Positions 2,144 through 58,894 of a stretch of DNA of 64,000 nucleotides are shown here, in pieces. The first letter of the stretch is position 1. Each line of letters opens with the position of its first letter. Made by a program: the position numbers and the translations under genes. Under the pieces are notes generated by a model that was not told where the DNA came from, searched no databases, and was given only the letters and a program-made list of their open reading frames with translations. This stretch comes from Dimorphilus gyrociliatus (lineage: Eukaryota; Animalia; Annelida): contig CAJFCJ010000017.1 of assembly GCA_904063045.1 (NCBI GenBank), positions 868,001 through 932,000 of the forward strand, given 5' to 3'.

Positions 2144-3496
2144 CTAATTTACATGGAACACTTGGAATCCGAATGATGATCTCCTTCGAGATTTATTCTG
2201 TTTGATATCTATTCCGTTGTCGAATTTTACAAGTCCATGCTCAGTGTAATCTGCTCCGAGAATTTCATCTTCAGATGACATTCGCAGTCCAACAGCTTTC
2301 TTAATAATACTTAAAAGTATTATTGAACACATTGCACTCCAGGCCGCTATGCAAACAAGAGCCAAAATTTGAACACCTAGTAGATAAACCCCTCCCCCGT
2401 GAAATAGTCCAGCCCTTCCTCTAGTTACGTCTTCGATTGGATCAATATCAGCAAACAGACCGACAACAATCATTCCCCAAATACCGCCAATTCCATGAAC
2501 AGCGAAAGCCCCAACTGGATCGTCTACTTTGAAATATTTAAAAATGGGATTCACAATAAAACTCAAAATTGCTGCAAGTGATCCTGATAAAATCGCTTCC
2601 CATGGACGAATTACAGCACAGCCCGCTGTAACGCTTACCAGGGATGTAAGAACAGAGTTAACTAAATCTGTTACTACAAATTTGCGCTTGTTAATTATCC
2701 AGCTAAACAACATTCCAGATACACCACCACCCATTGATGCTGTTATTGTAGTGACTGCTGACTTGGCTGCCAATATCCATTTTCCACCGGAAATACCAAA
2801 CGTACTTCCACAATTAAATCCTAACCAACCCCACCAAAGCATAAACATGCCTATTAACGAATTAGTGGGGTTACCAGGAGGATCGAGTTTTCCGCCGTCA
2901 TATTTTCCTTGTCTTGGTCCTAACATAACAGCGGCAACAAGAGCCGAAACAGCCCCGAGGACGTGAACTCCACCGGATCCTGCAATATCTACAACACCAA
3001 GATCTCGAAGGAAACCTCCGTCGACCCACAGCCAATGAGCACTCACGCAATAAACCCAAGTGTTTGTTAATGAATATAAGATGTAAGCTGTCAATTTTGT
3101 CCTTTCAGCCATTGCACCAGAAACTATTGTTGTTGCTGTAGTTGCAAACGATAATTGAAAGATGAAAGTTGAATAAACTATGCCCATTTCCTTTTCATTT
3201 TCTGAATCAAGTAGGAAGCTCCCAACTCCACAAAATGCATTAGCGTACTTTCCTTGACCGAAAGTTAATCCATAACCAAACGCCCAGTAAGTTATGCCGC
3301 CAAAAACGACATCGACAGCGTTCTTTACCATAATATTTACTTCATTTTTTGCTGACACACATCCGGCTTCCAAGAGACCGAAGCCTGATTGCATGGTAAA
3401 AATAATGAAGGAAGATGTTAATATCCATGTTGCGTCATCCCAAGTCATTTGTGGATCCTCCGTGGGGAGACGTGTTTCATTTTGGTTACAGGGCAT
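2144..3496 (-). CDS. amt: Ammonium transporter (Amt family), intronless, 450 aa
   Basis: Amt motifs MQSGFGLLEAG, FQLSFA, DIAGSGGVH, WWGWLGFNCGS and FAVHGIGG. Both pore histidines (SAHW, AVHG) are present, with multiple hydrophobic helices. Confidence 0.95.
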   Translation of the reverse strand: MPCNQNETRLPTEDPQMTWDDATWILTSSFIIFTMQSGFGLLEAGCVSAKNEVNIMVKNAVDVVFGGITYWAFGYGLTFGQGKYANAFCGVGSFLLDSENEKEMGIVYSTFIFQLSFATTATTIVSGAMAERTKLTAYILYSLTNTWVYCVSAHWLWVDGGFLRDLGVVDIAGSGGVHVLGAVSALVAAVMLGPRQGKYDGGKLDPPGNPTNSLIGMFMLWWGWLGFNCGSTFGISGGKWILAAKSAVTTITASMGGGVSGMLFSWIINKRKFVVTDLVNSVLTSLVSVTAGCAVIRPWEAILSGSLAAILSFIVNPIFKYFKVDDPVGAFAVHGIGGIWGMIVVGLFADIDPIEDVTRGRAGLFHGGGVYLLGVQILALVCIAAWSAMCSIILLSIIKKAVGLRMSSEDEILGADYTEHGLVKFDNGIDIKQNKSRRRSSFGFQVFHVN

Positions 3497-3712
3497 GCTT
3501 GTAACAACTGATTAAATAGTACATAGTTTGTCAAGGAGGGGAAGAGCGCCATCTATCGTCCATCGTTTTCATATTAATCTTTTCTCGCTTATTGACAAGC
3601 ATCAATATAGAGCGACGTCTATTTATAGTAATCCCACTTTACGCTGTCTTACTGCAACCTTAGTTGTCTTGTTTATGACAAAATGACAAACTAAGTGATT
3701 ATCATCAGATGA

Positions 3713-4510
3713 TGACGTCATTGTAGTGCTTGTGAGAAAACAAATTAAGCTAAATGTATTTTGGTCAATTATATTTTTGTTCTTTTTATAGCCATTACTG
3801 GAAAATTGATTATAAAAACTAGGTCATCTGTATTATATATGTATGTACCATTACCAAATACGGTATATCCCGATCAATGACACTTGGAAAGAGCGGTTAG
3901 GAAAGGTAGCCTTAACGTAAGGTTTCGAAACATCTAAAATACGTTGACGTATAAAATTGTAGCATCTAACTGAAATATTCTCTGAAGTTTTCAGACGAAT
4001 CAGTCTAGGCCACGTGACGTCATTGGCCGAATAGTTTAGATAATTTAGATTATCTTTTTCTTTTTTCTAAAAACAAGCCTTATTGTTTCCATTCTACTAC
4101 TATGAAGAAAACTACAATATGATAATTTAGAGAAACTTAAGCGTTTTGTTTTTTCTTTTCACCTTGGGAGAGAATATAAGGCAATGTATATTCATATCTA
4201 TTACGGCGGAAATAGGAATCCAAATACGGCAAATGTCGTGACGTCATCGGAAGGTACCTACCATATAAGGAGATATTAAGAATTCTCGATAAGTAATCGG
4301 TTTTGATTGATAATATTTAGTAGAGTAAACTTATATTTTATCATTCCATATCTATATGAATATTTATTTGAAAAATATATGAAAAGTAAGACAATAAAGC
4401 GCCGGAAATAATCGAGTATTTTTCATACATATTTAAATGAGGAAGCTATGCAAGCTGATTGGCTGTCAGGCAGAGCGTATTCTTGTGAAGCGCTGCTGAG
4501 TATATATAAG
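3713..4510. promoter_or_regulatory. Immediate-early-gene-type promoter between the divergent Amt and EGR genes: CRE + CArG/SRE + ETS + CCAAT + TATA
   Basis: TGACGTCA at 3713-3720, 4015-4022 and 4239-4246. Perfect CArG CCATATAAGG at 4261-4270. CArG-like CCAAATACGG at 3854-3863 and 4220-4229. ETS cores CGGAAA/CGGAAG near 4207, 4248 and 4403. Inverted CCAAT near 4458. TATATAAG near 4503-4510. Confidence 0.75.
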
Positions 4511-5967: not shown

Positions 5968-7323
5968 ATGCAACTATTTCCGGTGGGCTTTTCTCGCTTT
6001 TTTTCAACGATTTTTGCTCTTTCCTCTGGTCAGGGGAAATGTGGAGTTGCAGTTTTTAGGGTAACAGGACCTAAAGCACGAAATGTTCTTTTTCAACTGA
6101 CAAAAATGCGTAAATTACCGATTTCAAGGAAATCTCTATTGAGGAATGTCTATAATCCCATATCGAACGATCGAATTGACCAGGCACTGGTGACGTGGTT
6201 CCCTGCACCCGCTAGCTTTACAGGCGAAGACTGTGTTGAAATACACGCGCACGGAGGCAAGGCCGTTGTCTCTGCTATTTTACAATCTCTTTCAAATTTG
6301 CCCGACTTTCGGCCGGCAGAAGCGGGCGATTTCACAAAAAGGGCGTTTACTAACGGTAAATTGGATTTGACTCAGGTCGAGGCACTCGCTGACCTTATAG
6401 CGGCTGAAACTGAAGCTCAGAGAAGCCTAGCTATACGGCAGTTGGGAGGAGAATTAGGCTTATTGTACGAACAGTGGAGGAGGGATTTAATCGAATGTTG
6501 TGCTTTTATTGAAGCCTATATTGATTTCGGGGAAGAAGAAAACTTAGATTTCGATATAAAGGTGAATGACCGCATAAAGTGCTTATCGAACGAAATTAAG
6601 TGTCACCATTCAGAGACAAAAAATGCTGAACGTATACGTGTTGGTGTTAAAGTGGCAATTTTAGGACGACCAAACGTGGGAAAGAGTAGTCTTTTTAATC
6701 GATTAGTGGGTAGGGAAAGGGCAATCGTATCACCATACGCTGGTACCACTAGGGATATCCTGGATGCTGCTCTTGACATAAATTCATACGCTGTAATCCT
6801 TACTGACACTGCAGGCCTACGAGACGACATGAAAATTGATATTGTAGAACAGGAAGGTATAAAGCGGGCCATACAAACAGCTTCTGAAGCCGATTTAAAA
6901 CTATTAGTTGTGGATGCTACGGACGGGGATGTTCCTTCTGAAATAAAAACTGATGAAAATACTATCATCATTTGGAATAAAGTAGATCTTTTAAAAGAAC
7001 CAATTGTCCAAGATGGCATTAAGTTATCTTGTAAAACTGGAAATGGTATGGATGAATTAATTGAAACATTGAGTGAAAAAGTAGAACACTTATGTATCAA
7101 TCCAAATTCACCGAATCCAATATCATCAAATGCCCGACATTCGTATCATTGTAAATTATGCTTGGAGAGTTTAGAAAATTATTCAAAGCTAATTAAACAA
7201 GATATAGTATTAGCGGCCAATGAACTTCAAATAGCTATAAATCATATGTCCAAATTAACTGGAACAATAACTAATGATGATATATTAAATGTAATTTTTA
7301 GTGAATTTTGTATTGGCAAATAA
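5968..7323 (+). CDS. GTPBP3: Mitochondrial tRNA-modification GTPase (MnmE/MSS1 family), intronless
   Basis: TIFALSSG, FTGEDCVEIHAHGG, G1 GRPNVGKSS, G2 GTTRD, G3 DTAG, G4 NKVD and C-terminal FCIGK. Confidence 0.97.
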   Translation: MQLFPVGFSRFFSTIFALSSGQGKCGVAVFRVTGPKARNVLFQLTKMRKLPISRKSLLRNVYNPISNDRIDQALVTWFPAPASFTGEDCVEIHAHGGKAVVSAILQSLSNLPDFRPAEAGDFTKRAFTNGKLDLTQVEALADLIAAETEAQRSLAIRQLGGELGLLYEQWRRDLIECCAFIEAYIDFGEEENLDFDIKVNDRIKCLSNEIKCHHSETKNAERIRVGVKVAILGRPNVGKSSLFNRLVGRERAIVSPYAGTTRDILDAALDINSYAVILTDTAGLRDDMKIDIVEQEGIKRAIQTASEADLKLLVVDATDGDVPSEIKTDENTIIIWNKVDLLKEPIVQDGIKLSCKTGNGMDELIETLSEKVEHLCINPNSPNPISSNARHSYHCKLCLESLENYSKLIKQDIVLAANELQIAINHMSKLTGTITNDDILNVIFSEFCIGK

Positions 7324-28425: not shown

Positions 28426-28494
28426 TCACTGGTTGACGAGAATATTCTTTGCTCTCTTGTCAGCTACTCTAATGCGATTATCCAGCGATACGGC
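28426..28494 (-). CDS. SNAP25: SNAP25 alternative terminal exon b ([22 protein letters not shown])
   Basis: Long polypyrimidine tract and TTTAG acceptor, phase 0; aligns residue by residue with terminal exon a. Confidence 0.85.
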   Translation of the reverse strand, partial: AVSLDNRIRVADKRAKNILVNQ

Positions 28495-31374
28495 CTAAAC
28501 AAAAATAACGAAAAGGAAAATTTTAAAAGGGGAAGATCTATTATTCACGCAGTAGTTTATTAGCTCTCTTATTCGCCTCTTGAATACGTGTTTCGTTCGA
28601 CATGCCCTGTGAGAAGCAGAGAAATGCAAAGCAGAAAATTAATAGAAGCGTTAATCGATAGCGTAAATATATCATGTGCTGATTCCTTCCGGCAGTAATC
28701 ATTATGACAAAGGCCAGCAATTAACAAAGCGAAAATCTCTTGGAACAAGAGTAAAGAAGAAAAATTAAAAGAATAAAGTGCCAAACCTTCTGATTTATGC
28801 GGTCGATTTGTTTATTCTGCGATTCCAGTTCATTGCCCATATCCACAGCCATGTTCCTTAGATTTGATATCATACCACTAACTTCTCCCAAATTCTGTTC
28901 CATTTCATCCTCCCTTGCATCGTTAGTTATTCGAGTCACGTAATTACCAGACATTCCGGCTTGATTGTCGCCAACTATCATTCTTGGTCCGTTTGTGTTA
29001 ACCTATAAATAATTTACAAGTGATATTATCATTTTTTACTATATTTCCTATTATTAATATAATTATACATAATATTATTATTGTTATTAATGTTATTATT
29101 AGTAAGAGTATCAGTAGTAGTTTAAGTAGTAGTAATAGTATTATCTTTGGTAAAAAACAATTTCTTTGGTCAGAATTCTATTTTAATTCTTCCCTTCATT
29201 AGCCTGCTTCTTATGTGTCTATTTCTGCTAAGAACGACAAAGAAGGGGTAAACTAAATCAACTAAACTAACCTTTCCATCTTCATTCCCCTTCCAAGTAT
29301 CCTTATAAGCGGAATCTTTTTCGAAATTTTTACTCCTCTTCCACGGCAAGACGCATAGACCGCAACATTTTTCCATACCCTCCAAATTCTTTTCGGCATC
29401 TTTCATATCTTGATTAATCTGATCCATTCCTTCTTCGATCCTCTCCAATTGTTCTATAAGCGAATTTAATAAACTTAAAGCTAGTCTTTACTCAGAAATT
29501 TTCCACTCAAATAATTGCAATTAAACTAGAAAAAAAAAGGAATAAAACAAATCGTTCTTAATCAAAGATGATTGGAAAGCAGCTTATTTCCTAATCTGTC
29601 TAAGAATATCATACCCCCTTGAACTGCTAACGTTGCAATAGTATTCACCCCGGCATCTTGTGTCTGTATTTTTTGGTTTGTCAGTTTACACATACAAATA
29701 AAAAAGATAAAGATAAAAAAAAAAAGGAAAAATAAAAGGGATGGTTTTGCTATCAAATGCAGATCGAAATTGGAGAGTTTTTGCAGTTGACACCAAGATC
29801 AACGCAATGTACATATAAATTCGTTTAGAAAACGATAAAATATAACTAATAAGCACATAGAACTAAGAGCGGTTATCAAACAATACTGATACTATGAAAA
29901 ATATGAAAAACGACACTAATAAGTACAAACCAGAAAAAAAGGAAAAAAAAACATTTCATATAATAGATAAGAAAATCAAAAGATAAGAAATTAGGTGAAA
30001 AGGACAAGAAAAAGAAATTGATCTATGTCGATTATAATCCTTTTATAAACAATAGAACGCTTTCCAATCATCGATATCGTCAGAATTATCACTGTTCTTG
30101 TTATTGTTGTTATTCCTTTTATTGCTTGTCTGGCGTTTATTTTTTTTTTTTGTATCTAAGAAAAATTTTCAAAACAAACCTCCTTGTTCGTCCAACATAA
30201 CGAGCGTCCTAATTCCAGCATCTTTACTCTAAAAGGAAAAAATGCAACAAATACGAAAATAGACAAGTTACCAAAAGAGATATTGAACACACTCATCTAC
30301 AATTATAGTACATACTTGTTTATAATAAATACTATAGACAGAAAAAACATCTTCAACTTAGGAAACAAAGTATAAAAGTGAGAAATGTACGTAATTATAA
30401 TAGTAATAATAAAAAGAATAATACTATCGTAAATATTATACTTAATTAACAACACATTGGATTATTTATTACGTAATGGCACTTATTATTAGTTAAAAAA
30501 AATCAGTAGCATAGGCGAATAATCTAGCAAAACTATTGTATGTAAAAAAAGAAAAAAAAACCAAATAGGACAAAAAATTGATAAGTCACATGTAAATTAA
30601 TTATACGATCTCAAACAATAATACTTGTTCGCTATTCTCCAACAAAACAAAAAGAAAAAAAAAAGACAAACAATACACATAAGCAGTACTAGTTATGCAT
30701 AAAATATAATTTTAACTTACCTCCTCGCATAATGCCACCATGCGTCTCGTACTCTCCAAACTCTGTTTCGAAAAATGGCATTGATTATTTAGTATCTTTT
30801 CGTTAAAAAATTGAAATAAACAGGAGAAAAGTGGAGTTATCTGTTTAAACTTTTAAGTAATGAAACAATTATTAACTAAAGTTTTAAGATCGATGAATGT
30901 CAATTGACAAGAGACGCCGCTTGGTTAATAAAGCTTGAACCTGAATTGTTCCATTATTAATATCCAATTGAATTTGTTCATCTTCTGTAGGTGTTCGGAT
31001 TGGACGCTCCTCCTCATTTTCACATTGTTTTTCAGAGTAACTCATTACATCGACCGGCGACCGTTTTCATAGTTCGAATATTCGTACAGGGAGACGCCGC
31101 GCGCGAAAATTACAACGTCTAGACGATAGGCGGCGTTGGACACAGTCAGATCGATAGGCAAAACGCAGTGTAATTATGTAAAAATCGATTTCAAAGCGTC
31201 CGCCCATAAATCGACAGCGACTGTCATAATGTAGAAGGAGAACCAAAACGGGGTGGGGAGAAAGGAGGCGAATGAATGAATTGTACTAACCTCATCAGTT
31301 TTTGCATTCATTTGCATGTGAATGTCCATGGGACCAGTAGGGCTACCAGCAGTGGGGCTTTGTGGTTCCTCCAT
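28426..31374 (-). CDS. SNAP25: Synaptosomal-associated protein 25 with three alternative exon pairs; constitutive exons 30762-30721, 29453-29272 and 29002-28787
   Basis: Reconstructed [14 protein letters not shown] / [16 protein letters not shown] / [29 protein letters not shown] / [14 protein letters not shown]...[11 protein letters not shown] / [15 protein letters not shown]. All GT-AG junctions are phase-consistent, and the 42-nt and 49-nt exons match vertebrate SNAP25 exon sizes. Confidence 0.97.
28541..28606 (-). CDS. SNAP25: SNAP25 alternative terminal exon a ([21 protein letters not shown])
   Basis: CACAG acceptor, phase 0; closest to the canonical SNAP-25 C-terminus. Confidence 0.92.
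   Translation of the reverse strand, partial: GMSNETRIQEANKRANKLLRE
29567..30072. repeat. Perfect 14-bp intronic inverted repeat flanking SNAP25 49-nt exon B
   Basis: GATGATTGGAAAGC at 29567-29580 and its reverse complement GCTTTCCAATCATC at 30059-30072. Confidence 0.85.
29615..29663 (-). CDS. SNAP25: SNAP25 mutually exclusive 49-nt exon B ([16 protein letters not shown])
   Basis: TACAG acceptor and GTATGA donor. Same length and phases (0 to 1) as exon A, with DAG..T...L..QG conserved. Confidence 0.88.
30180..30228 (-). CDS. SNAP25: SNAP25 mutually exclusive 49-nt exon A ([16 protein letters not shown])
   Basis: TTTAG acceptor and GTTTG donor. The peptide is identical to vertebrate SNAP-25 residues 39-54 as recalled. 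Confidence 0.95.
30941..31045 (-). CDS. SNAP25: SNAP25 alternative N-terminal exon b ([35 protein letters not shown])
   Basis: ATG-initiated 105-nt open frame ending at CAG|GTTCAA in phase 0, which would join SLESTRR. A CpG-rich patch lies immediately upstream (about 31050-31210). Confidence 0.65.
31291..31374 (-). CDS. SNAP25: SNAP25 N-terminal exon a ([28 protein letters not shown])
   Basis: A CACAG acceptor precedes the ATG, the donor is GTTAG in phase 0, and the exon ends in ..TDE like canonical SNAP-25. Confidence 0.9.
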
Positions 31375-34300
31375 ATTGTTAGTCTGTGTATGAAAATAAA
31401 TGATAAAAACACAAAACTACATACATAATATATCTAAATAAAGACTTATTAAACCATCAAATTGCTTTACTTAGTTAAACGCTTCAGCCTTATCGAATAA
31501 TTTTTCCCTATTTATTTATTCAGAAACTAATTTCTGCATTATGATCAAGAAAAAAAAATTGACCGTCATATTGCTTTTCTTATTTATACAAATCGGTTTA
31601 TCGCCAATAGTTGTGGCTAAAACATGCTTTAACCTTTACTTTTATTCTACTCAATATTATTCCGCTGACTTCCTCATATAACAAACTGTAACGCAATCGA
31701 TTTCTTCTAGAGGAAGCCGAAAATTTCTCTTTAACAAAATTATCATTAATCCATCCATATCGGTTTATCTTATTCTCTTTTTTTTTTTTTTTTTCTCTTT
31801 TCATCCCTTTTCCTGCCTCCACTAACCGTCCCACCACCATTTACTCGGATCAATCTATCTATATCTTTTTCTCTGTCATTTACTCCCCCTCCTTTTTTTT
31901 TATAGTTTAATAAAAATGTCCTAAAAACCCAGCTGTCAAGGTAAAATAAAGATATATTACATAAGTGATTGTAAATATATATCAGTATAATATATTTATA
32001 AAAAAGATATTTTTCGCCTCTTCTCTTCTGCTATCTCACTCGCCCATTCACTCTTCCTCAATTACTGTCTTTGTTTCAAGAATTGAAAAGAAAAAAGATG
32101 ACAAGGCCGAAACTTTTTGGTGTATATTTCATTTTAGAACATTACTTAAAACAACCTTTTTATTGATTAGTCATAATCATGTATAAAAATATTAGAAAAC
32201 CATAAACTGTTGTATGAGTAATTAATAATACATGATTCATAAAATCATCATAATGTTCTTATGTGACACGTGGAGATATATCAATTGCAAACTGTTTTGC
32301 AAACGAGGTGATAGGATGAGAAAGAAGAAAACAAAATAAAATAAATTATTCCGGAGAAGATCATTCAAGCTAATAAACAATTGAAAATAAAAAAACAATT
32401 TGTATGTGTTTACAACAAGATCTATATATATTTTAGTGCCTTAGGAATGTTCTTCCAACAGCAATACTGCATTAAGACGTTTATATATATATATATATAC
32501 ATTCAGTACCAATATATATAGACTAATCCATAAAGATTTTATTGAAGAAATTGCGCATTCAATGTATTAAGACAGTTCTTGTCAACAGGCCAAAAACTAA
32601 ACAAATTGCATGCAATTGGTTTGTTAAAATAAAAAATGAAGAGATAGGAAGGGAGAGGTGGGATGAAAGGATTGAGGTACAAAAATAAAAACACAAACCC
32701 TCTTGAGAAAAGGCTCACTCTCCATAACGTTTTTTTTTCTGATTTTTTTTAGCTTACATCACCTGCTACATTGGGTTAGTACATGCAAAGATATATAATA
32801 AAATTCTATCAACTATAGATATATATATATATGTATATACTGAATAATAATATATTCTAAAAAATCGCCTACGTAAATTGATGCAGATTATAAAAATTAT
32901 ATAAACAGAGGAACCGAGCGACTGTTAATGGTAAACGGACCAGGAAAGACATCATAGCACTGAATTAGAACCAATTATTCTACGTTAATTCTCGTTAACA
33001 TCCACTAATTTTTATATTTAAACGATTTAATTATCATTTGAGACTATGAATTACCACAATCCACTTACGTTATAGCGAATTTAAGGGATTTAGAAGTAAA
33101 AAACCGCCTCCAAATCACTTGAGCGATATGGCTCCGATTTTTCTGTCCAATCAACAACCAGCTTACAGGAAAGAGTTATATTGGCCTATTAAACATTTTT
33201 GGCGCACATTTCACTTCATTCAAATTTCATGTTACAATTCTTTACAATTTTTTAAGGTGAAAAAAGGATAGTGATTTATAATTAACATTTATTTTCTTAT
33301 AAAACTGTACGCAGAATAAATTAGACTATGAATAAATTAATTACATTATCAACATTTAAAAAGGTATTATTCTCTTCTTATTATAATTCAGCAATTATAT
33401 AAAATTAGAACAACTTGCTCTTTAATAATGCAATCGGATCAAACGCGGGGAAAAAATATTTCCATAAGATACATTAATGGATAAATAAAAAGATACTCTA
33501 GGTATCTTTTAACATAGTTAATTCAATAAGTAAAGATTTAATCAAATGTAAATTTCGAACAAAAATCTCTTTTGTGTGTGTATCATTTACTTTCATTGAT
33601 ATTCATATCCTTTATTCAATTAAAAGAACACGTATAATGATTTTTTTTATTTGTTTTATCACCATATTCTTTTAATTGAAGGCTGTAAATCGTTAACTCT
33701 TTTACTTTATGCTTTATAGTTGCTTTGCATTTGCTTTATCCATATGAAAGATTATGCGAATAGCATGCAAATGGTGAATAATCTGAGAAGTAAAAATCAG
33801 TTTTCTCCCAAGTTCTCTCTCTTTCCTTTTTTAATTTATATTACAATCCAACGGTGAAATTGAGAGAAAAATGAGTTTTCTTTGATATAGTTTTTGCATT
33901 TCCTGCCTAATGAAATACTACTGAGTAAAAATTTTTCTCTTTGATTAGAAAAAGAATTGTCTTAGGAGAAGATTTATGGCATTTTTATGATTAATCAATG
34001 TAACGCGAAGTCTCTTTATTAGTTATAAATGTGACCTTAGAAATGTACTGTAAATTTTACATTTCTTAATCTTTATCAATAACTGCGAGATATTAGGAAA
34101 TATATTAGCGTATTCTAATTAACATCTGCAAATCGAGACTTACGGATTTTCCGATTTCCGAAATCGATTTCGCTTTCTTTCGGAATGTAGTAATTTTACG
34201 TGTTTAAACTTGCAGTCTATTGTTTGTTAAGTTTTATTTTGAAAAATCATATATTTTCTTATTAATTTTGACTGTAAGTTTTAATATTAATAAGAAGCAG

Positions 34301-53824: not shown

Positions 53825-54984
53825 TCTCTTTTTTTACATTTTCCTGACTAGATTTCTAGAAAAAATTGTACGCCGATCACTTACTCAGTCATTGTTTCGC
53901 ACAACAAATTGTTAATATACGATGAGGTCAGTGCCCAAGAGATTCTTTAAAATAAATCCCGCTATCCACTGATCGCTGAGAACTTGTATTCACTTTTCTG
54001 TCTAATCCAAAATATTTGTAGTGTGATAATCCATAAAAATGAATCAATTCAAAGGGTTTAATGGGTTTTATGCGTGATTTCGCACGAAACGTTCAGTCAT
54101 TTTCGTTCTACAGCGGAAAAGCAAGATGTAAACAAGCAACGACGCTGATTGGCTAGTTTTTTATTGTTCTTTTCGTATAAATTTTGTTTCGGTGCATAAT
54201 CGCTAGCGGCCCCTGCCGTCGCGTGTATCAGCGTAAAGTGTACTAATATAACAGAAAAGTACATTTAAAAAGTAATGAATATTTAATAATTGCTAAGCCC
54301 AAGATCTGTTTTCTCTTATGACCCAATTTCGGTCCATCATGGAACCGCATTCTTTTTTTTTACTTTTAAATTGAGGTATCAGTAATACTACACCATTCAA
54401 ACTTAAGTTGTCTTATTCTCTCATATCAGGATATTCTACACATTCACTAAATAAAGAACTATCAATGGCAAGTGTGTGGCGTAATTTCAACAGGCAGTAA
54501 ATTTATTCAATGTACTGAGTTGTTTTTTCTCTTTTAACTATCTAAATATGTCTTGTTGAGCTCCAATTTCTCAGAATACTCAAGTTAGTACACCTGCAGA
54601 GGACGCTAAATTTAACGCTGCAGATGTCGCTAATTAGTTTTTCTATTGTCAAAAACACTGTAGAATCCTCCCCCGCTTACATAAAATTACATACAATTCC
54701 GGAAAATTACGACTCTTAATCTATAAAATTGTAATTATTAATTACTTATGAGCTATTTAAACTTTGTTAGATAAGATCCAACGTGTTTTTTTCCCTGTTG
54801 TATCATTCGATACGCACGCAACACATAGGAGCATCAGCGAAAAAAAAAATAACTAAATGACGTCACAAAGTGACGCGACTCAAGAAAAGTTTGAACAAAT
54901 AGCTAAATGATGACAAGCGAGATTCCAGCAGTTTTCCCGATAGAAACTTAAATTAGTTAATTATATAAGGTCCAAGAATCCAGC

Positions 54985-58140: not shown

Positions 58141-58894
58141 ATTTTTATCAGTAATAGTATTAAGTTATCTTCAAAAATCTCAATATTTGGAAACGTAGAT
58201 AATGATTAATTAACAGTCGCTATCTCCAAAACTATTTTAATCAAATCGCTAAATAGTTCTTGTCGTTTATATGTCGGTTATTGATATAAAAAAATGATAT
58301 GAAAGTCTTTCGTTATAGTCAAAGTATAAAGAATATATTTCTCTTCGTCGTTTAATCATCTTATCTCTTTCCCCTTGTTTTTTAATTAAAAAAAATTATA
58401 GTAATAAAAAGTAACAACGCTGATTAATTTATAATTAATAAACTTTCTCTTGTTTATATCTCTCTAAACATGGAAGAAAATGAATAATCAAAAAAAAGAT
58501 TACAAGAAAAACGTAATTAAAAGAAAAAAAATGTACAAACTTGCTAAAATCTAGTAACACTTCATCTCGGAAAAAATATTAAAATAACGTAATATACATT
58601 GATATGTACACATTTTATATATTTATACTTGCAGTTTAAAAATACAAGTATAAATATTACACGCATTCATAAAACAGATAAATACATACATATACATTTT
58701 ATATATATGTATATCTATATATATACATATATATTGTATATATATAGATTACAATACATAAGAGTATGTATTTACACTTTGTACTTGGCTTAGTAAAAAG
58801 AGTTGAGATCAATAAATTAAATAGATACAATTTCATTAATTTACAAAAAAGAGACTGATGAAAAATAAAACAAATTCTAGTCTTTAGCAACCAA

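Follow-up and report, generated by a model that had tools for sequence, protein, structure and literature searches.

Two alternative 49-nt exons in a SNAP-25 gene, one with a predicted change to the synaptotagmin-binding face

Does the SNAP-25 gene in the window (the whole 64-kb stretch of DNA analysed) encode two t-SNAREs that differ on the surface that meets the synaptotagmin Ca2+ sensor? The gene contains two successive 49-nt exons, A and B, for the same stretch of protein (residues 39-54), which we take to be the counterpart of vertebrate 'exon 4'. To our knowledge, nearly all work on splice variants of SNAP-25 has dealt with vertebrate exon 5.

The gene is a member of the SNAP-25 family of Qbc t-SNAREs, with both SNARE motifs, the zero-layer Gln and the linker Cys cluster. 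Its product is 94.5% identical to the Dimorphilus gyrociliatus SNAP-25 protein over 163 amino acids, which marks the window as DNA of a dinophilid-like annelid, and 84% identical to gastropod SNAP-25. The SNAP-25 family linker domain (Pfam PF00835) is shared between two exons that cover profile positions 1-25 and 26-56 and score 29.6 and 35.4 bits, above the cut-off of 25. The gene is very compact (~3 kb) and has the following exons (L numbers denote the loci compared–for example, L007 is the D. gyrociliatus locus and L001 is a Logan contig):

31291..31374, minus strand: first coding exon (MEEPQ...MQMNAKTDE), with donor gttagt; aligns with its counterpart in the Dimorphilus-like loci L001 and L007
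30721..30762, minus strand: 42-nt exon, 14 residues, equivalent to vertebrate residues 25-38; also in L001, L003, L007, L008 and L009
30180..30228, minus strand: exon A, 49 nt, 16 residues, with the canonical K40/D51/E52; this peptide also in the SNAP-25 of Capitella, Dimorphilus and vertebrates
29615..29663, minus strand: exon B, 49 nt, 16 residues, B-type; its position is orthologous to the B exons of L003, L006, L008 and L009
29272..29453, minus strand: next constitutive exon (QLERIEEG...CCGLCVLPW...GNEDGK), beginning with the split codon for E55; matches PDB SNAP-25 sequences and PF00835 (29.6 bits)
28787..29002, minus strand: exon encoding the end of the linker and the greater part of SNARE motif 2; 520 library matches at E<=1e-10, PF00835 35.4 bits
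28541..28606, minus strand: last exon, version a, 21 residues and stop; kept in L001, L003, L007, L008 and L009
28426..28494, minus strand: alternative last exon, version b, 22 residues and stop, directly downstream of version a

The exon at 29272..29453 (minus strand) holds the end of SNARE motif 1 together with the Cys cluster (CCGLC). Second last exons homologous to version b are found in Dimorphilus, Capitella, Owenia and Elysia, and also in mollusc isoform records.

Exons A and B are the only open AG-49nt-GT units between the flanking exons. Exon A has the acceptor ...ttccttttag and the donor gtttgt. Exon B has the acceptor ...aaaaatacag, with a poor pyrimidine tract and a CTGAC branch-point-like motif ~17 nt upstream, and the donor gtatga. 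A transcript with just one of the two exons stays in frame downstream of the 42-nt exon (30721-30762) as far as the final stop codon; one that has both, or lacks both, is shifted and meets an early stop in the next exon (29272..29453). Because 49 is not a multiple of three and transcripts of the latter two kinds meet this stop, exactly one 49-nt copy is expected per transcript, and the other products would presumably be cleared by nonsense-mediated decay. The original prediction had placed two exons, together 98 nt long, within 29615-30228 and had argued that they must be exclusive since including both would shift the frame; both points hold, and leaving both out shifts the frame as well.

A pair of complementary intronic segments might contribute to the choice between the two exons:

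30059..30072, minus strand: duplex arm 1, perfect 14 bp, in the intron between exons A and B, 108 nt downstream of the exon A donor
29567..29580, minus strand: duplex arm 2, in the intron between exon B and the next exon, 35 nt downstream of the exon B donor

Pairing of 14 bp was reached in 3 of 400 shuffles. The duplex (-21 kcal/mol) is part of the minimum free energy fold, with a pair probability of 0.44. If formed, it would loop out exon B and may bias the choice towards exon A.

Aligning the two peptides with PDB chain 1sfc_C gave their residue numbers (S39...G54): the QG that closes each exon falls on Q53-G54, Q53 being the zero layer. Relative to exon A, exon B has S39T, K40Q, I44V, R45N, L47I, V48A, M49T, D51A and E52V, and positions 43, 46, 50 and 53 are the same. 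The claims that exon B changes K40 to Q, D51 to A and E52 to V, and that it retains the hydrophobic core positions and the zero-layer Gln (G43, T46, L50 and Q53), are thus borne out by the alignment. Scored against a profile of B-type exons from other species, exon B reaches +31 bits, compared to -13 on the A-type profile. No unrelated 16-mer in the 64 kb of the window does better than -17 bits on the B-type profile, a gap of 48 bits. On these scores, its resemblance to B-type exons is far beyond chance. It carries the signature of that class (Q or E at position 40, with G43, T46, L50, Q53 and G54 retained) and departs from the B consensus by K45N, V48A, M49T and D51A, although N45, T49, A51 and V52 each occur in other B-types.

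The prediction had presented the exon pair as a discovery, but the same pair is already there in named mollusc and arthropod isoform records and in the genes of Capitella, Owenia and Elysia. In these three genera, as in the window, the 42-nt exon and the EQL.RIEEG exon flank two tandem 49-nt exons of the same phase, with A upstream of B. In Homarus the next exon is preceded by three 49-nt copies, and the last of them, directly before it, is B-type. Isoform records that differ in this 16-mer only exist for Pomacea, Mercenaria, Mya, Physella, Bacillus rossius, Daphnia and Procambarus, and a B-type sequence also occurs in a hemichordate protein. A Logan contig of 1153 nt (L010) has an intron-free coding sequence for a complete B-type protein, so B-type mRNA must exist in another species, as the named isoform records also imply. 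Among the matches listed in three large protein searches, none was recognizable as a protein of the window species. The distribution indicates that the A/B pair is an old arrangement, shared by annelids, molluscs and arthropods, and not a new one. Our literature searches found no paper on this invertebrate exon switch, which is represented by dozens of isoform records in sequence databases. A 1999 study by Johard et al. reportedly dealt with 'sequence variability' of cockroach SNAP-25 and may describe the 49-nt exon. A paper on butterfly splicing names SNAP25 among differentially spliced genes.

We compiled residue statistics from 93 distinct 16-mers. Counted as distinct sequences, which are not phylogenetically independent, A-types have K40 in 20/20, D51 in 18/20 and an acidic residue 52 in 19/20. 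B-types, counted likewise, have K40 in 0/70 and Q or E at this position (Q40 in 39/70), position 40 itself having been used to sort A from B. Among the same B-types D51 is found in 43 of 70 and an acidic residue 52 in 16 of 70, and the core is near-invariant (G43 in 67/70, T46 in 69/70, L50 in 69/70 and Q53 in 70/70). I47 is present in 20 of 69 B-types versus 1 of 19 A-types, and 20 of 69 B-types have no acidic residue at either 51 or 52, exon B of the window being of the same kind. The most variable B-type positions are 48, 51 and 52, with 10-12 residue types.

What would such a change of residues do? K40, D51, E52 and E55 are indeed, as the prediction stated, residues of the primary interface between the SNARE complex and the C2B domain of synaptotagmin-1 (PMC9811660; PMC8967716), and interface residues and mutant phenotypes have also been described in a C. 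elegans preprint. Mouse neurons with SNAP-25 D51N/E52Q have impaired evoked and increased spontaneous release, and their primed pool is normal (PMC11494337). At the level of sequence, exon B lacks the interface residues K40, D51 and E52, and E55, D166 and the acidic residues of syntaxin are unaltered. Because the inward core positions (S/T39, G43, T46, L50 and Q53) are retained, both isoforms should form SNARE complexes. The changes in exon B would rewrite the outward face, which in vertebrate SNAP-25 makes up much of the primary interface with synaptotagmin-1 C2B. By analogy with the mouse mutant, the predicted B isoform would be both poorly triggered and poorly clamped, and might suit slow, tonic or non-neuronal secretion. 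B-type exons in general have lost K40 and usually E52, which adds comparative support to this reading of the interface. 'Uncoupled', the word used in the original prediction, does not describe the B class, because most B-type exons retain D51. Nor should K40Q uncouple by itself, because SNAP-23, which has this substitution, supports Ca2+-triggered fusion with Syt2 in reconstitution (PMC8967716). What we observe directly is the anatomy of the gene, its homology and its pattern of residues, and altered synaptotagmin coupling of the B isoform is a plausible extension of them; its consequences for binding and physiology, and the use of exon B in the window species, we infer. Taken together, we think it probable that exon B is an old alternative 49-nt exon with its core kept and its synaptotagmin face rewritten, and that it makes a SNAP-23-like t-SNARE with a predicted alteration in how it couples to the fast Ca2+ sensor.

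Exon B is absent from the two closest loci, D. gyrociliatus L007 and Logan contig L001, and exon A is present in both. Because these loci do without it, exon B must be dispensable in the dinophilid-like lineage. A segment of L001 (TQDTVNT followed by a stop) that we considered as a decayed exon B gives no evidence of a relic, with a local alignment score of 22 compared to a shuffle mean of 24.6. The absence from L007 and L001 raises the alternative that exon B in the window is itself a dying relic of an exon in the annelid ancestor, unspliced or yielding noise removed by nonsense-mediated decay, and heading for a loss that is complete in Dimorphilus. Its weak acceptor, its four departures from the B consensus and its lower score than exon A on the B-type profile (31 vs 39 bits) point the same way. 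However, it still has its length of 49 nt, an open frame, the AG and GT, the five core positions and the QG end. The introns of the window gene have no alignment left with those of the Dimorphilus-like loci, so an exon that had long been neutral should be unrecognizable. The lack of an acidic residue at 51 and at 52 is nothing unusual among B-types, its N45, T49, A51 and V52 are known from other B-types, and regulated exons usually have weak sites. We consider decay an unlikely explanation.

A second alternative accepts that exon B is used, but for another partner–for example, another synaptotagmin isoform, disassembly by alpha-SNAP/NSF, templating by Munc18/Munc13, tomosyn or channels–or for tuning how stable the N-terminal half of the SNARE bundle is or how fast it assembles. 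The variation of the B face between species (10-12 residue types at 48, 51 and 52) would fit relaxed or partner-specific constraint better than a single defined switch, and SNAP-23, with its B-like K40Q and L47I, still works with Syt2 (PMC8967716). Judging by the titles of the papers concerned, the differences between vertebrate exons 5a and 5b act via priming and pool stability. On the other hand, the positions where A and B characteristically differ, or where B-types are most variable (40, 47, 48, 51 and 52), are listed positions of the Syt1 C2B primary interface (PMC8967716), and changing D51 or E52 singly affects release strongly and specifically (PMC11494337). An effect through another partner therefore seems to us rather improbable. 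The last alternative, a chance open frame in an AT-rich intron that resembles exon A by accident, could appeal to a segment of only 16 codons and a poor acceptor tract, but is effectively refuted by the 48-bit profile gap and by B exons of the same length, phase and position in four other genomes.

The 49-nt exons form a switch on the synaptotagmin-binding face of the helix, with a B class that lacks K40, usually lacks E52 and keeps the fusion core. The B-types thus offer an existing set of naturally occurring interface variants on which current models of clamping and triggering can be tested. The window's own exon B is of modest value, being a further and rather divergent copy from a lineage in which the closest loci no longer have it.

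The closest known systems are the isoforms of molluscs and arthropods, such as Pomacea canaliculata X1/X3 vs X2/X4 and Mercenaria mercenaria X1-X8, which have the same 49-nt exon in the same phase and place, with A followed by B. Bacillus rossius X1-X3 and Daphnia pulicaria X3/X4 differ in the same 16-mer, SK(E/D)AG vs S(Q/E)D(V/A)G. The B signature (Q/E40 with conserved G43, T46, L50 and Q53) is common to these isoforms and the window gene, and so are the companion switches, an alternative N-terminal exon and an alternative last exon. The window's exon B is more divergent than their B-types (N45, A48, T49, A51 and V52), and insects and decapods, unlike the window gene, have three or more exon versions.

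Engineered SNAP-25 mutants neutralize the same positions as exon B, both in D51N/E52Q and in the quintuple mutant K40A/D51A/E52A/E55A/D166A, which has been used to break the primary interface (PMC9811660). Exon B differs from them as a natural variant that keeps E55 and D166 and has six further changes. As in Dscam1, whether by docking and selector sequences or by simple looping-out, complementary intronic arms would enclose one exon (exon B), but the window gene has one pair of arms without a competing set of selectors, and its duplex is without comparative support.

In vertebrates, SNAP-25a and SNAP-25b arise from mutually exclusive tandem exons 5a and 5b in the first SNARE motif (PMC2581893). 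They resemble the window pair in gene family, in sharing the same core and in differing at surface residues. However, the vertebrate duplication affects the exon for residues ~56 onward, with the Cys cluster, whereas the window gene duplicates the preceding 49-nt exon (39-54) and has a single equivalent of exon 5, so it does not have the vertebrate exon 5 switch. Because the vertebrate duplication arose within bony fish (PMC2581893), the vertebrate and invertebrate exon duplications are independent.

The comparison with SNAP-23 suggests a possible evolutionary link between the splice forms and the SNAP-25/SNAP-23 gene pair. Relative to SNAP-25A, SNAP-23 has K40Q, L47I and V48T at the interface and keeps D51 and E52 (PMC8967716). 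Its K40Q and L47I are hallmarks of B-types, and exon B of the window has K40Q, L47I and V48A. We suggest, tentatively and as a possibility we would not bet on, that invertebrates make SNAP-25-like and SNAP-23-like t-SNAREs from one gene by means of the 49-nt exon, and that each paralogue retained one of the ancestral versions after the vertebrate genome duplications, the K40 type in SNAP-25 and the Q40/I47 type in SNAP-23. The B exon would then be a repeatedly re-tuned clamp and trigger face, in which the state of residues 51 and 52 sets the tightness of clamping and triggering in the cells that use it. SNAP-23 nevertheless differs from exon B in being a separate gene, not a splice form, and in having kept the D51 and E52 that exon B has lost.

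The window has the base composition of AT-rich animal DNA and contains a compact SNAP-25 gene on the minus strand, from about 31374 to 28426.

Exons of the SNAP-25 gene (plus-strand coordinates)
31291-31374, minus: first coding exon
30721-30762, minus: 42-nt exon
30180-30228, minus: exon A, 49 nt
29615-29663, minus: exon B, 49 nt
29272-29453, minus: 182-nt exon with the split codon of E55, QLERIEEG...CCGLCVLPW...
28787-29002, minus: 216-nt exon
28541-28606, minus: last exon, first of two tandem alternatives
28426-28494, minus: second alternative last exon

Both large exons score over the curated threshold of Pfam PF00835, and both also match PDB chains of SNAP-25. Once spliced, the gene encodes a protein with 84% identity to gastropod SNAP-25 and, over 163 residues, 94.5% identity to the Dimorphilus gyrociliatus protein DgyrCDS11406; the D. 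gyrociliatus locus (L007) aligns to the window in the exons alone, the introns being saturated. The analysis accordingly took the window to be from a dinophilid-like annelid other than D. gyrociliatus. The tandem last exons alter the end of SNARE motif 2, and both types are kept in Dimorphilus, Capitella, Owenia, Elysia and mollusc isoform records. At L007 3001-4650 the deposited DgyrCDS11406 protein (P0405) ends in VCVQMYIVIKIVVPVL, where translation runs on into the intron that follows the SNARE-motif-2 exon, and both genuine last exons lie further downstream (at 4499 and 4602), so the 3' end of this model appears to be wrong. In the intron preceding the 42-nt exon, positions 30941-31045 (minus strand) form an open segment from an ATG, then gttcaa; it is a weak candidate for an alternative N-terminal exon of the kind that mollusc isoforms have as their second, and gave no alignment to Dimorphilus-like loci. 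The roughly 60 nt of intron directly upstream of the 42-nt exon (30763-30822, minus strand) have about 75% identity to a Logan contig (L001), to which the other introns are unalignable, and may be a conserved splicing element; the window's alignment to L007 did not reach this stretch.

Exons A and B are both exactly 49 nt long, start in phase 0 and have AG/GT flanks, and they are the only open AG-49nt-GT units between the neighbouring exons. Because each is 49 nt, exactly one is usable per transcript: A alone or B alone leaves the frame open to the stop codon, whereas including both or neither shifts the frame and causes termination within the next exon. Such mis-spliced transcripts, carrying early stops, would probably be degraded. 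This frame argument for exclusivity was part of the original prediction and is correct, as are its peptides, coordinates and residue numbering, alignment to PDB SNAP-25 chains fixing the segment as S39-G54 with the zero-layer glutamine at Q53. Nine positions (39, 40, 44, 45, 47, 48, 49, 51 and 52) differ between A and B, which share their residues at 41, 42, 43, 46, 50, 53 and 54. Four of the five core layer positions (39, 43, 46, 50 and 53, by heptad count from Q53) are unchanged, and position 39 is merely S to T.

Dozens of species already have the A/B pair in their public gene models, and the window adds one divergent member. Protein records of many species differ solely in the 16-mer, SK(E/D)AG... 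versus S(Q/E)D(V/A)G..., and three genomic loci share the order 42-nt exon, 49-nt A, 49-nt B, next exon.

Isoform records differing in the 16-mer
Pomacea canaliculata: X2/X4 versus X1/X3
Mercenaria mercenaria: X2/X4/X8 versus X1/X3/X7
Mya arenaria and Physella acuta
Bacillus rossius (X1/X2/X3), Daphnia and Procambarus
Several Hymenoptera and Diptera

Genomic loci with the shared exon order
Elysia crispata (L003): A at 29760, B at 31505
Capitella teleta (L008): A at 3237, B at 3582, third 49-nt copy at 2881
Owenia fusiformis (L009): A at 54416, B at 58643

The hemichordate Saccoglossus also has a protein (P0371) with an SQD-type segment. One 1153-nt Logan contig (L010) carries the whole coding sequence of a B-type protein in a single uninterrupted ORF and is thus a spliced mRNA, so the B-type exon is expressed at least in that species. 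In Homarus americanus (L006), three 49-nt copies precede the next exon, and the last, adjoining that exon, is B-type. This locus has at least three copies (at 7188, 10001 and 13876), and insects have a third, well-conserved version (P0316, P0322, P0326, P0337 and others); the cluster has thus grown in arthropods. In Capitella the start of the following exon is also present in three tandem copies, at 4341, 4558 and 4913 (EQLDRVEEGMEQ..., EQLDRIDEGMDQ... and EQLERVEEGMDH...), a possible parallel to the duplication that gave vertebrates exons 5a and 5b.

Among 93 distinct 16-mers, which are not phylogenetically independent, 20 are A-type and 70 B-type. Position 40 was the sorting criterion, with K40 in 20/20 A-types and, among the 70 B-types, Q in 39, E in 28 and K in none. 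A-types have V48 (19/20), D51 (18/20) and an acidic residue at 52 (19/20), whereas in B-types D51 occurs in 43/70 and an acidic 52 in 16/70, variability being highest at 48, 51 and 52. The B-type core is fixed (G43 67/70, T46 69/70, L50 69/70, Q53 70/70). Just nine of 69 B-types are acidic at both 51 and 52; 20 of 69 are non-acidic at both, as is the window's exon B. I47 is found in 20/69 B-types versus 1/19 A-types. Despite the shared ancestry of these sequences, A and B contrast strongly: the face that is frozen in A is free in B.

The two closest available relatives, L007 and L001, have exon A and both last exons without exon B. (An apparent relic of exon B in L001 was not significant and was rejected.) Since the window's exon B also has a pyrimidine-poor 3' splice site and differs from the consensus of B-types at 45, 48 and 49, it could be a decaying relic, but we think this improbable: its length, reading frame and splice-site dinucleotides are preserved, as is every core residue, in a lineage whose neutral sequence is saturated. 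About equally improbable is a role by way of some partner other than synaptotagmin-1, or by way of the stability of the bundle. A chance open frame is ruled out: a profile built from B-type exons of other species scores exon B at +31 bits, whereas the highest-scoring unrelated 16-mer from a six-frame reading of the window gets -17 bits, so exon B is an orthologue of an ancient alternative exon.

The probable reading is that exon B is a true alternative exon which changes the face bound by synaptotagmin. The B isoform should still form the four-helix bundle and would show synaptotagmin a different, SNAP-23-like, non-acidic face. As for the choice between exons, the A-B intron (30059-30072) can pair with the intron after B (29567-29580) in a perfect 14-bp duplex, a length reached in 3 of 400 shuffles; it occurs in the minimum-energy fold (pair probability 0.44, -21 kcal/mol). 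This duplex would enclose exon B and could favour the A form.

On SNAP-25A the primary interface with synaptotagmin-1 C2B comprises K40, D51, E52, E55, Q56 and D166, and L47 and V48 lie in it or close by (PMC8967716). The standard way to disrupt it is the K40A/D51A/E52A/E55A/D166A mutant (PMC9811660); in C. elegans the interface has been modelled as conserved (bioRxiv 2025.09.30.679486). B-type exons strip K40 and E52 from this face while the core is frozen, and are similar to SNAP-23, a general pattern that appears undescribed and is directly testable; the literature searched yielded no paper on the 49-nt pair, and a 1999 cockroach paper may touch on it. The stronger claim, that exon B toggles SNAP-25 from synaptotagmin-coupled fusion to a fully uncoupled form, seems doubtful. 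SNAP-23 differs from SNAP-25A at the interface by K40Q, L47I and V48T, with no others, and supports Ca2+-triggered fusion in reconstitution with Syt2 (PMC8967716), so K40Q alone does not uncouple the sensor. Its K40Q and L47I are B-type hallmarks, and the window's exon B has K40Q, L47I and V48A. In mouse neurons, evoked release is severely reduced by D51N while the primed pool stays normal, and E52Q increases both the release probability and spontaneous release; D51N/E52Q combines the two effects and is "neither clamped nor efficiently Ca2+ triggered" (PMC11494337). The more frequent B state, which retains D51 but not E52, is similar to mouse E52Q, and the window's exon B (K40Q, D51A, E52V) is similar to the double mutant.
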